DNA of 64,000 nucleotides from Gracilinanus agilis (Eukaryota). The translations under genes were made by a program, and so were the position numbers. This document shows, one piece after another, positions 2,777 to 33,995 of the stretch. The notes under the pieces are model-generated. The model was not told where the DNA came from. It did no database searches and saw nothing but the letters and a program-made list of their open reading frames with translations. Location: the NCBI RefSeq assembly GCF_016433145.1, contig NC_058133.1:518178263-518242262 (forward strand), read 5' to 3'. The stretch's first letter is position 1. Each line of letters begins with the position of its first letter.

Positions 2777-2932
2777 TCAAAAATAAAAGTCACCATTGGA
2801 TGAAGATGATGAATGAGGAAATACTTTGGGGCAAGAGTGTTTCTTTCTGGTTGCAGTAGGCTGTCCACTAGGCAGGAGGAAGTCTCCCCAGGATTCTCCA
2901 GGTCTGTTGGTCAATCCATACATATTTCCTGC
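2777..2932 (-). CDS. AHR1B: AHR-family terminal coding exon 11: AGNMYGLTNRPGESWGDFLLPSGQ...SSNGDFYF*
   Basis: Strong acceptor ttttcccttttccag in phase 0, matching the exon 10 donor. 52 codons to TGA, close to the 48 codons of human exon 11. Sequence conservation is weak. Confidence 0.75.
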   Translation of the reverse strand, partial: AGNMYGLTNRPGESWGDFLLPSGQPTATRKKHSCPKVFPHSSSSSNGDFYF

Positions 2933-3875
2933 CTGGAAAAGGGAAAATGAAGGCACCATTTAGTTATGTCCAAGGGGTGAATTATGGGAGGGGAGGACAC
3001 AGAGAAATTCTAAGATGAGCACCTGGATTCTACAAGGGTTAGTTGGTAGCTGTGTCTTTGAAGAGAGTAACCACTTTGACAGAAATTAAAGAATTAAAGT
3101 ATTGAAGAATGGAAAATTCTCCACAAGGACTTGCCAGACTAATTAGGCAATGGATAGTAAGTCAGTGTCTCTTGGCCCCATTCCATTTGCACAGTTCTAT
3201 TTCCTTACTAGAGCTGCTCCAGTTGTGTGAATCAAATACCCTCTTTCTCCATAAATTGTTATGTAACATAGACCAGTACCCTGTCTTGCCCATCGAAGCT
3301 GCTCTATAAATATTTGCTGAGTGAATTAGTGGACTGAGTGACACAGATGACTTACCAGGATCCAAAGCACTGTGGTGTATGGTATTACAAGTATGTCTCT
3401 AAAGAAGGGCCAAGGACTGAGGGACAGCAGTTTCTATAAGGATTAACAGCATGACATGGCAAACAAGAAGAGTAGTTTGGCTATGATAAGAGGGTCATAT
3501 CAATCTGTTCTAGTCATACAACACATAGAACGGAGTGTCCCATTCTAGGTGACACAGTGCAGGGAGGATGGTGATAAGCTAAATAGTATCCAATGGAAGG
3601 CAAAAAGGATGGTATGGGGTCTTGAGTTCATATCTATCCTGTTGATTATTGTAACATACAGAGCAACATATGCTGTGTATTATATGCACTGATGTAGCAT
3701 TGTACCTGTGCTTGTAATTAGCTACAAACCTAACTGAGAAAGACCAATCCACCTGTACAAAGATGATCCACGAACACACCATAATTTCAACTAAACTAAT
3801 AATAGTCGATAAGAGTTCTACTTTTTCAGCTACATGCTAGGTTAACTGCCATGCCCAGGTGCATTAAAAACTCAC

Positions 3876-5529
3876 CAATATCTCTTGGCACCCATCTCCA
3901 TTAATAAAATGATCAGAAGCAGAATTCTGAAATGGAAACTTGACCTCTGAAGAAATGGATGCAGAAGGTTTTAAAGGGGTAGGGTAACATGTGCAAGGTG
4001 GCAAGAATCTTTGCCCAGGCACCATCTCAGCTCCAGTTCCATGACTACTGCCAATGTCCATGTAATCTAATATTTTCTGATTGACCTGGGCCTGGGACAT
4101 GTTAGAATCTCGTTGAGTATTTCTTGAGTAGACCTGTGAACCAGGATTATTCCCCACTTGGCTCAGAAGCTTTGTTTTAGTTGAGTGCTGAATCCTGGAG
4201 GCACGGTCTGGCCATGGGTTGCCACCTAGAATTTGTTGATTGGGTGAATCGCAGCTCTGGACACTATTCATGAGTAAGCTCTGGTCAGTGGTAGGTTGTA
4301 GGAGGGTCCCTGATTCTGAGGGTTCCTGGCCATGAAGCTGCTGTGTTTGAACATAAAGCTCGTTTGGGAGTTGATGCTGAAATAGGAGCTGGTGATCTCC
4401 ATGTTGTGATCGTGAATGATTCTCCAACCGCTGCCTGCTTTGTCTGGGCTGGCAGGAATTCTCTAAAGAATGACGGGAGAAGGATGGGCTCAGAAGGCCT
4501 GAACTGTTGGGTGGTGGCCACTGTATACATTGCTGTTGGACATCTGCAGGTGACTGTGAGAAATGAGTAGACAGATTCTGAGATGTTACTGATAACGGCC
4601 TCCATGGATCTCCTCTGTTCTGATTCCGCATCTCATTTGTCACATGCTGGGATGGGCTAGACTCCCAAGGAAGGTGACTCAGATGCTTCTGGCTTACATC
4701 ATGGTGATGCATTGTCTTTGGAAGGCACAATATTTGGGCTAGCTGATTGGATTGGGGTTCTTGGGATAAATGAAGTGGATACTGATGTGCCATATGAGAA
4801 TTGTTGACTTCAGAGTCTTGGCTTAGGTCAGATAAAGAGTGAGCTTTCAAGGAAGTCTGGGAATCCCCAACTTGTTCATCCTCATGTTTGCTCAAGAGGG
4901 AATCATGAACATGGGACAAGATCTCTCTGTTTGCTAAGATATCATTAAGAGATGGACTAGAGCCTGGATTCTCTCCCCCCCTCACCCTCCACTCATCAAG
5001 CAAAAGTAGCTCCAGCTCCTCAGCATTAAGCCCCAGGTTTTCCAGGGCACTTAAGAGCTCATTGTTGGAGCAATTCTCATCACAATCAAGAGAGAGGGAA
5101 TCAAGGGTAGCTAGAAGGGCAGTTCCTTGACTCAAATCAAGTAGTTCCTTATGCTGAACCTCAGAAGAAATCACCTTTGAAGATCCCTCCAGGTTGTCTC
5201 CTGCTACCCTATTCACTAAGGGCTCTTTAATCTGGCTGAAAATGCCACTGCTGAAGCTAGTTTCTGGAGTCACTGTTGCATGTGACACATTGATGGCCAC
5301 ATCCTGTCGCATCATGGCACCAAGAAGTGAATTAGGAGCTGGGAGATCTATCTGGCTCCTTTCTCCTTTAGTAGCTTTTTTGAATTTAGGAATTTTGCCT
5401 TGAGTTAGGAAAGGATCAGGAAAACCAGGATCTGGGTGGGTGGCTTGGTAGAGAAGTGCTTCCCCAGTAGCAAAGGTAAAAGGATGGTGGAGAGATCTTT
5501 TCTGAAGGTGTTCTCCTCCTTCTTCATCC
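3876..5529 (-). CDS. AHR1B: AHR-family exon 10 (1654 nt): end of PAS-B plus acidic, Q-rich and P/S/T transactivation domain
   Basis: Acceptor tttctctgcag|G GAT GAA, donor TTG|gtgagt. Lies within the 560-aa ORF 3864..5546, with motifs [27 protein letters not shown] and LNDILANREILSHVHDSL. Confidence 0.96.
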
Positions 5530-5710
5530 CTGCAGAGAAATACCAATGTTTTAAGAAATGCAATACAAAGAAAATGTCCTCTCCTAGAGTCCCTTCTTGG
5601 TATGAAGAGAGTAGATGAAGGTGGATGATCAATCCTGACTCACCTTCACCTCTCAGCTGCTTGGGCATCTGAGAAGGAAATGCGCACCTGCAAGGGAAGT
5701 GTATACTCAC

Positions 5711-5852
5711 ACAAGAGGCCTTTGGGTGGCAATGATGTAATCAGGTTTGCCATTTCGGTAGACAAGTCTGGCATTAGACTGAACCCAACGCCAACGGTTT
5801 TCTTTGGTCAGAAGACGAAACACTGTCAAGCCACTTTCCCCCGTTCTCATCA
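5711..5852 (-). CDS. AHR1B: AHR-family exon 9 (142 nt, PAS-B): [48 protein letters not shown]
   Basis: Acceptor tgtttcctag, donor TGT|gtgagt. 142 nt. Confidence 0.97.
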
Positions 5853-6599
5853 CTAGGAAACATGTGAATGGGTTAAAATTAATAAGAATATGTGACATGT
5901 CTTTAACAAACCAAAGTTCACAAAGCACTTTCCAGATCTTATTGGATTCCAATGGCAACCACGAGTATTATTCTTCCCTTTTTACACATGAGGAAATGGT
6001 CTTAGAGAAAGATTGACTCATAGTTGGACTTAAGTGTTATAATCAGAATCTGAAGCCAGGTTCTCTTGACTTCAAGTAAAGCATACCACATTACCTCTTG
6101 AGGCTTTAATAATGTTATTTCATCTCACTTAAGGTTCCCACATCTAGAACTAGAAGGAACTTTAGGGATCAGTTAGTCAATACCATTCCTTTTCCATATG
6201 GGGAAATTGAGGCCAAAGAGATTAAGAGATTTGCCCAAAATCACACAGAGAGTAACTGGCAAAGATATAACTTGAACCCAGTCTTCTGATTCCAAAAAGT
6301 CTGTTCTCATTGCTTCAATGAAACATGATTTATTTTTCTCTTTGTATCATCCCTGCCCCTTAGAAAACAGGCAGAATAGAGGCTTAATAAATACCTGTTG
6401 ACTTACACTGAATTGGTCTTAGTGAACACTTTTGATTGGTTTTCTTTTTTTTTTTAATTGGAAGAAAATCACATGATACTAACATCATTTCACAATTGGG
6501 ACAGTTAACAGTTATTTGCCCCTAGCAGAATGCAAACTCTTTGAGAGCAGAGACTACTTCATTTTTGTCCTTGTACTCCAGGTGCCTCGCCCAGTGCCT

Positions 6600-32763: not shown

Positions 32764-32982
32764 NNNNNNNNNNNNNNNNNNNNNNNNNNNNNNNNNNNNN
32801 NNNNNNNNNNNNNNNNNNNNNNNNNNNNNNNNNNNNNNNNNNNNNNNNNNNNNNNNNNNNNNNNNNNNNNNNNNNNNNNNNNNNNNNNNNNNNNNNNNNN
32901 NNNNNNNNNNNNNNNNNNNNNNNNNNNNNNNNNNNNNNNNNNNNNNNNNNNNNNNNNNNNNNNNNNNNNNNNNNNNNNNNNN
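32764..32982. other. Assembly gap (219 N) in intron 3, next to an AGAT/GGAT repeat
   Basis: N run. Confidence 1.
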
Positions 32983-33039
32983 ATGTTCATAATCTCTCTT
33001 GGCTTCATGATTCATGAGGACTAACTAATCAGGAAAAAA

Positions 33040-33620
33040 AAAAACTTGCCTAAAAATTCCTAGAATAATGCTATACTTTTGGACCCAGAAATTCCACTGC
33101 TAGGTCTATACCCTGATGTTGTCAATAACAAAAAGAAAAACTCCACATATATAACAAAATATTTATAGCAGGGCTTCTTTCAAAGCAAAGATTGGAAGCA
33201 AAGTAGAGTCCCAATGACCGAAAAATGGTGATGATGGAATATTGTGAGATTATAAGATATGATTAATATGATTAGTACAGAAAAGAATCAAAAGAATTAT
33301 ATGAACTGATACAAAGCAAACAGAATGAGCTAAACAATCTTTACAATAACCCTAACATAATCTGACTGCTATGAAATTATAGTGACCAAGCTTGGTCCAA
33401 TGAAGAAACAAAGATACTTCCTTCCCCATTTTGAAGTGGGGGGAGGCTACAGACATGGAGCACTACCGATGTCTGACATTTTGCACTGATTAATTTTGGT
33501 GAGCTATTTCCCCCCAACCCCTTTTTTCTTCTCTGTTATAAGACACGGCTCTGGGGAGGAGGGAGGGATCCACGGGGAAATGTAGCTGATGTAAAACCAA
33601 CAGCTATTGGTAAATTTTAA
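33040..33620 (+). mobile_element. Old LINE-1 3' end fragment
   Basis: tactttttggacccag-like aaattccactgctaggtctataccc L1 ORF2 3' motif. Confidence 0.65.
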
Positions 33621-33882
33621 AAATATAAACCAAACAGGTCTGAGCCTATGATAGGCGAATCAAAACGCTTTGGAACAATAGTGTAGACCTGAGACTCAAC
33701 CCCAGCCGCCCCCTTCCTTTGCTCACAATCATGCTTAATCTTACGGTTCTTTAGTTACAAAAGGAGGCGCCCCCCCCCCGTTAGGGAAAGCCCTTTAGGA
33801 ATCAATAATGACTAAAGAGCAGAGCCATCTTTGCAAGCGTGCTAGACAGACTCCAACGAGAAAGCATGCCTGAAGCGTTAAC

Positions 33883-33995
33883 CTGGAGGAGAAGTTCACC
33901 CTCGGGCACAATTCTGCCTGCCCGTCGCCAGCTTCGGTCCCCTTCGTGGCTGGGGCTTGCGGACCACTCCTTGGCGCAGCAGCTCTTCCGGGTGA
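33883..33995 (-). CDS. AHR1B: AHR-family exon 3 (113 nt): TRKSCCAKEWSASPSHEGDRSWRRAGRIVPEGELLLQ
   Basis: Acceptor ttcactgcag, donor CAG|gttaac. Ends in the conserved EGELLLQ. Phase 1 start and phase 0 end, as in AHR exon 3. Confidence 0.9.

Follow-up and report, generated by a model that had tools for sequence, protein, structure and literature searches.

Which of the vertebrate aryl hydrocarbon receptor (AHR) paralogs is encoded on the minus strand of a 64,000-nucleotide stretch of the genome of the marsupial Gracilinanus agilis (contig NC_058133.1, positions 518,178,263 to 518,242,262, assembly GCF_016433145.1; hereafter, the window), and is the encoded protein likely to be a working receptor? 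An earlier note, made from the letters of the window, had proposed a non-canonical AHR of the type called AHR1 in fishes and AHR1B in birds. Our analysis upholds this proposal: with a probability of roughly 0.88, the window carries exons 3–11 of the AHR1B-type gene of G. agilis, which lies downstream of AHR2 in a head-to-tail pair and represents an ancient vertebrate paralog kept across the main marsupial orders. A model of the gene was already public, as were the family of paralogs and the tandem arrangement, and extra AHR paralogs in some mammals are already described in the literature; the contribution made here is a firm paralog assignment together with the distribution of the gene across marsupials, not a discovery.

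Paralog assignment and the AHR2 neighbour

The assignment was addressed by a maximum-likelihood tree, a check suggested in the earlier note. It was built with IQ-TREE (LG+C20+F+G4, posterior mean site frequency profiles, PMSF) from 75 rows and 448 columns of the region that covers the basic helix-loop-helix (bHLH) and PAS domains; support is given as ultrafast bootstrap / SH-aLRT (Shimodaira-Hasegawa-like approximate likelihood ratio test). In this tree the spliced product of the exons found in the window (the window protein) falls inside the AHR1B clade (100/99), among the AHR1B proteins of shark, fish, amphibians, turtles and birds, and not with canonical mammalian AHR. It pairs with the protein of Monodelphis (100/98), and the pair is nested in a marsupial clade (100/100) within AHR1B; in a quick tree the tetrapod AHR1B subclade received an SH-aLRT support of 97. 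The clades recovered are as follows.

AHR1B clade, support 100/99: zebrafish ahr1b, turtle, bird and shark proteins
Canonical AHR clade, support 100/98: rodent AHR, carp ahr1a, bowfin and skate proteins
AHR2 clade, support 94/96
AHR3-like clade, support 100/97
AHRR clade, support 100/100

The acidic block that the earlier note had taken for a mark of the AHR1 and AHR1B type behaves as such in the alignment: the pattern L-E-x-L-G-L-x-A-E-(D/E)-L-E-L-L-L-L-D-E is present in all 21 rows of the AHR1B clade, the window protein included, and in none of the 37 canonical, AHR2 and AHR3-like rows. Searches with exon 10, which encodes this block, returned marsupial proteins named 'AHR-like' (63–72% identity), followed by proteins of turtle, bird, coelacanth, shark and fish; beyond the marsupials many of the matches are named AHR 1b, zebrafish ahr1b included.

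Two other placements within the family have to be weighed against AHR1B. The gene could be considered a divergent form of the canonical mammalian AHR (AHR1A) of G. agilis, considering that its PAS-B domain is approximately 80–90% identical to the solved human and mouse AHR chains and that the order of domains is the same. However, the canonical clade stands apart in the tree (100/98), and forcing the marsupial proteins into it costs 77.4 log-likelihood units and is rejected by the approximately unbiased (AU) test under LG+F+G4 (p 1.8e-5); moreover, the block restricted to AHR1B is present, and no canonical mammalian AHR occurs among the best 120 matches of exon 10. We regard this placement as hardly tenable, the tree sample being limited in that it holds no marsupial canonical AHR. 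An assignment to AHR2 might be favoured by the fact that the AHR2 clade provides the other member of the tandem pair and that opossum and platypus retain proteins of this clade according to a published tree (bioRxiv 10.1101/2022.07.13.499904), but it meets similar obstacles and is just as hard to believe: the AHR2 clade is separate (94/96), the union of the marsupial proteins with it, forced under the same model, costs 67.1 log-likelihood units and is also rejected (p 6.6e-4), the gene reads TQRPL and not RQRAL, and in this genome the AHR2 clade is represented by the upstream neighbour described below. The statement of the earlier note that AHR2 reads RQRAL is correct for five fish AHR2 rows; the pattern used did not match in the majority of AHR2 rows. 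As to the repressor AHRR, it is expected to be devoid of a working PAS-B; the protein considered here has a complete PAS-B, and the AHRR clade lies elsewhere in the tree (100/100).

A further check suggested in the earlier note was a comparison with the AHR1–AHR2 tandem locus of fishes and birds. According to the gene table of GCA_016433145.1, a gene of the AHR2 clade (P0158) ends 1,990 bp upstream of the AHR1B-type gene, with which it shares strand and contig. Its product (939 aa, with HLH and PAS domains) is placed in the AHR2 clade beside an AHR2-like protein of Monodelphis; since this gene belongs to AHR2 and lies upstream on the same strand, the pair consists of AHR2 followed by AHR1B, head to tail. 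In chicken an AHR1B-like gene adjoins AHR2 on chromosome 7 (PMC3229566), and zebrafish has a tandem ahr1b–ahr2 pair (review PMC13747243); the match of the G. agilis locus with them concerns the adjacency of the two genes. The P0158 gene itself lies no more than about 5 kb past the right edge of the window. Its model is odd, with the PAS part at residues 471–760 and a range of 125.7 kb, and is possibly fused upstream or cut short at the C-terminus.

Gene structure in the window and beyond its edge

A comparison of four marsupial proteins with the window by tblastn yielded nine collinear blocks, the borders of which were set by hand and then checked by a script for splice signals, phase and frame. 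The resulting features are listed from the 5' end of the gene.

33996..64000, minus strand: part of intron 2, >30 kb, devoid of AHR-like exons and of any other evident gene
33883..33995, minus strand: exon 3, 113 nt, linker between bHLH and PAS-A, beginning with 2 nt of a split codon
32764..32982, no strand: assembly gap (run of N) in intron 3
26008..26249, no strand: assembly gap (run of N) in intron 3
25016..25105, minus strand: exon 4, 90 nt, start of PAS-A, sub-threshold Pfam PAS match (17.3 bits)
19977..20100, minus strand: exon 5, 124 nt, PAS-A
14653..14783, minus strand: exon 6, 131 nt, end of PAS-A
10969..11171, minus strand: exon 7, 203 nt, inter-PAS linker and start of PAS-B (ligand-binding domain)
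10571..10680, minus strand: exon 8, 110 nt, PAS-B
5711..5852, minus strand: exon 9, 142 nt, end of PAS-B, Pfam PAS_3 match (24.8 bits)
5530..5710, minus strand: intron 9, 181 nt, covered in its 3' part as deeply as an exon in a relative's RNA
3876..5529, minus strand: exon 10, 1654 nt, C-terminal transactivation half with the AHR1B-specific acidic block ALENLGLNAEELELLLLDE
2777..2932, minus strand: coding part of exon 11, 51 codons and TGA, with the 3' untranslated region (UTR) extending leftwards

The claim of nine exons in an uninterrupted frame is borne out. The exons, running from 33995 to 2777, have AG acceptors and GT donors throughout, all 16 splice signals are intact, and the joined sequence forms one frame of 906 codons closed by a single stop, the TGA at 2779–2777; the ends given in the earlier note coincide exactly with the acceptor of the first of these exons (33995) and with the stop codon (2777). 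The residues quoted there are contained in the translation of a minus-strand open frame of 560 aa at 3864–5546, and TQRPLV forms the end of exon 9, the exon preceding this frame. A whole PAS-B and some 600 residues of the C-terminal part are encoded in the window. Among solved AHR structures, matches were obtained for exon 7 with an E-value of 1.7e-29 and for exon 9 with one of 1.6e-22. The joined translation was used for the frame check, the pairwise comparison and the tree only, while the database queries were single exons or public proteins.

Both runs of N lie inside intron 3. The junction of exons 3 and 4 is in phase 0, and the peptide across it (...EGELLLQ|ALNGFVLVV...) follows the Gracilinanus, Monodelphis and bilby proteins collinearly and without loss of a residue; therefore, the gaps touch no coding sequence and hide no exon. 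This reasoning concerns the continuity of the coding sequence, as distinct from that of the scaffold itself, which lies beyond what the window can show. Elsewhere in the window (about 14995–15095, 18110–18330 and 30790–31270) the translations consist of CV, TH and SL runs, which, judging by the translations only, suggest long intronic dinucleotide repeats.

At all 906 of its positions the spliced product agrees with residues 78–983 of XP_044532510.1 (P0270), a 983-aa 'aryl hydrocarbon receptor-like' protein of Gracilinanus agilis, which means that the gene has already been annotated. It comprises 11 exons, and the window holds exons 3–11 only. Residues 1–77 of the public protein contain a complete, intact bHLH, with the basic region SNPSKRHR(D/E)RLN, encoded to the right of the window. 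Neither the bHLH exon nor exon 1 was detected in the window by a motif scan or by tblastn at E 1e-3 and, with short words, at E 50; between 34 and 64 kb no gene-like open reading frame is seen. The gene is annotated as spanning 64,310 bp, and the distance from the stop codon to the end of the window is 61,224 bp, from which it follows that exons 1–2 are located at most about 3.1 kb past the right edge. The designation of the gene as 'intact' in the earlier note accordingly holds for exons 3–11, seen in the window itself, and for the bHLH part depends on the public gene model.

Two candidate exons were considered and rejected. A segment at 43397–43329 (LPFPSHISSPF.KIW..) resembling the bHLH exon is preceded by a stop and lacks a basic region, and we consider it a chance match. 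In the wombat protein A0A4X2KUQ7 the residues that replace exon 3 match positions 34923–34870 (minus strand), approximately 900 bp upstream of exon 3; this is probably a mis-called exon, as it is missing from the other marsupial proteins and as the open stretch resembles others in the window. The long open stretch around 34870–34923 has a translation similar to those of other stretches of the window and is perhaps a repeat.

Conservation, ligand pocket and expression

Orthologues sharing the C-terminal half of the protein were found in 10 other marsupials that represent all main orders, both American and Australasian. The identity to other marsupial proteins amounts to 93–96% in PAS-B, 87–93% in PAS-A and 64–71% in the C-terminal half, and the bHLH stretch NPSKRHRERLN...SFFQ is identical in six species. 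Within exon 10 no insertion or deletion was observed in three sequencing runs of relatives (X1, X2 and X3, characterised below), as against 6–20 gaps per 300–400 nt in the adjacent intron 10. As to other mammals, the search of annotated proteins revealed no AHR1B-type protein of placentals or monotremes at E 1e-60 or better, crocodile and turtles being the next matches. The other paralogs were surveyed by searching cluster representatives with the bHLH-PAS part of turtle AHR1B, source names being read for 30 of them; proteins of the AHR2 clade were encountered in such placentals as rabbit, elephant, elephant shrew, water buffalo, elephant seal and white rhino (P0167, P0175, P0194, P0171, P0186 and P0188). 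Placentals with AHR2 and with no AHR1B-type protein seen imply that, if this absence is real, the members of the tandem pair were lost independently.

For the ligand pocket we take as its constituents, in human numbering, H291, F295, Y322, I325, C333, M340, M348, F351, L353, V381 and Q383. The human AHR residue is found at 9 of these 11 positions; where human AHR has V381 the window protein has Ala, as do all 8 canonical rows, and where human AHR has M348 it has Leu, which is the norm of AHR1B. The position of human Ile325, encoded in exon 8 (within GYQFVH, at about 10600–10620 of the window) and presumably corresponding to position 324 of bird AHR1, is occupied by Ile in the six species compared from the Australasian and microbiotherian marsupials. 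The state of bird position 324, Ile or Val, is tied to dioxin sensitivity in one study (PMC4901312). The His, Ala and Gln residues that zebrafish AHR1A has lost are retained in the window protein; this loss leaves zebrafish AHR1A blind to the dioxin TCDD (PMC3252317).

Transcription was approached with four sequencing runs (X1, X2, X3 and X15) compared with positions 2650–5600 of the window, which span exons 10 and 11, the intron between them and the adjoining 3' part of intron 9. Run X15 is almost identical DNA, probably that from which the assembly was built. Runs X1 and X2, considered as possible RNA, appear to be DNA of a relative, all their loose ends being at GATC, as in Hi-C libraries; they carry no information on expression. 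Run X3 (680 million letters) comes from a relative differing at 6.4% of exon 10 bases. One of its contigs (3,856 nt, depth 71.5) covers exon 10 from 5529 to 3876, skips from 3875 to 2932 (GT..AG, minus strand), reproducing the junction 3876|2932 exactly as predicted, and then takes in exon 11 and over 1.9 kb of 3' UTR; the depth of intron 10 is only 5–7. The depth of 71.5 is too high for single-copy DNA in a run of that size, and the contig therefore represents spliced RNA of the orthologue.

Several observations weigh against the interpretation of the gene as an intact, working AHR1B. The marsupial stem branch is long (0.32, compared with 0.075–0.14 in turtles and birds), which makes some change of function possible. 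In two didelphids, Gracilinanus and Monodelphis, the place of human Ile325 is taken by Val, the sole departure from the usual residue among the pocket positions. The bHLH is encoded outside the window, and for residues 1–77 the term 'intact' depends on the public model, in which the basic region belongs to a protein whose other 906 residues are those of the window product. Exon 3, with the acceptor cag, has the weakest donor among the nine exons (GTTAAC). The Pfam matches of single exons (PAS, 17.3 and 15.5 bits; PAS_3, 24.8 bits) are below the curated cut-offs, as expected, because the exons hold only pieces of the domains. No RNA run of Gracilinanus agilis was found on record. Finally, a second contig of run X3 (149 nt, depth 80) extends from exon 10 across the acceptor into intron 9. 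Judging by the contigs only, most of this relative's RNA may either retain intron 9, at least in its 3' part, or begin within the gene; in the case of retention the frame ends at once (CTT GTG TGA), with the stop directly after PAS-B.

How far do these observations go? One might read them as signs of a decaying or non-productive copy, in which the frame is open and the RNA is mainly unspliced, truncated or not made: the lack of G. agilis RNA records, intron 9 as deep as exon 10 in the relative's RNA, the stem branch and the weak donor of exon 3 would all agree with this. Such decay is, however, difficult to reconcile with 906 open codons and 16 intact splice signals, with the same full-length protein modelled in 10 other marsupials of American and Australasian orders, with a PAS-B conserved far above the C-terminal half, with an exon 10 free of indels next to an intron that has many, and with a bHLH identical across six species, and we consider it quite improbable. 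It is also conceivable, if rather unlikely, that the gene works in a shifted role, having, for example, an altered range of ligands or yielding, through regulated retention of intron 9, an AHRR-like form that lacks the activation domain. The change from Ile to Val in the didelphid pocket, the marsupial-specific changes in helix 1 and helix 2 of the bHLH (ELECLA and TVSYLRTQSFF), the long stem branch and the exon-like depth of intron 9 are in line with such a shift; on the other hand, the remaining pocket residues are conserved, the same Val occurs in one bird AHR1B, and the intron signal comes from contigs of one run of one relative. The more specific proposal that marsupial AHR1B is used mainly by means of regulated intron 9 retention, which would produce either a silenced transcript or a bHLH-PAS protein devoid of the activation domain and competing with other AHRs in the manner of AHRR, appears very doubtful to us. 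Were it true, it would constitute a repressor mode not described for any AHR1B.

The gene most likely encodes, as predicted from its sequence, a working receptor of the AHR1B type. By analogy with characterised AHRs, the PAS-B pocket (exons 7–9) would take up ligands of the planar aromatic or indole type, the bHLH (encoded beyond the window) would, together with PAS-A, pair with ARNT and bind at xenobiotic response elements (XRE sites), and the C-terminal half (exons 10–11) with its acidic block would activate transcription. Ligand binding, DNA binding, activation and expression would be expected in G. agilis itself on the same grounds. Our literature search found no functional study of any marsupial AHR1B.

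Relation to known AHR genes

Marsupials would possess up to three ligand-sensing AHR genes, compared with one in humans and mice. This is of relevance for the reading of results on toxicology and diet sensing across mammals, and it bears on how genes were lost in the placental lineage.

The closest counterparts of the gene are public sequences. XP_044532510.1 shows no sequence difference from the window product, its name being silent on which AHR paralog is meant, and the Monodelphis domestica proteins K7E241 and XP_056670767.1 are orthologues, 92% identical to it. Canonical mammalian AHR, known from human and mouse structures (8h77, 7zub and 8xs6), shares the bHLH–PAS-A–PAS-B–activation layout and is matched by the PAS-B exons with E-values of 1e-22 to 1e-29, but it belongs to a different paralog clade and lacks the LENLGLNAE(D/E)LELLLLDE block. 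Among birds, the chicken AHR1B-like gene (ENSGALG00000004322) is located on chromosome 7 beside AHR2, and bird AHR1B falls into the same tetrapod subclade as the window protein, with approximately 84% identity in PAS-B, although only about 40% of exon 10 can be aligned. Zebrafish AHR1b (P0077), a TCDD-sensitive receptor (PMC3252317), belongs to the same clade and shares with the window protein the acidic block, the PLV(D/E) stretch, the conserved pocket residues and a tandem AHR2 neighbour, with an identity of about 81% for PAS-B and of 47% where the C-terminal half can be aligned.

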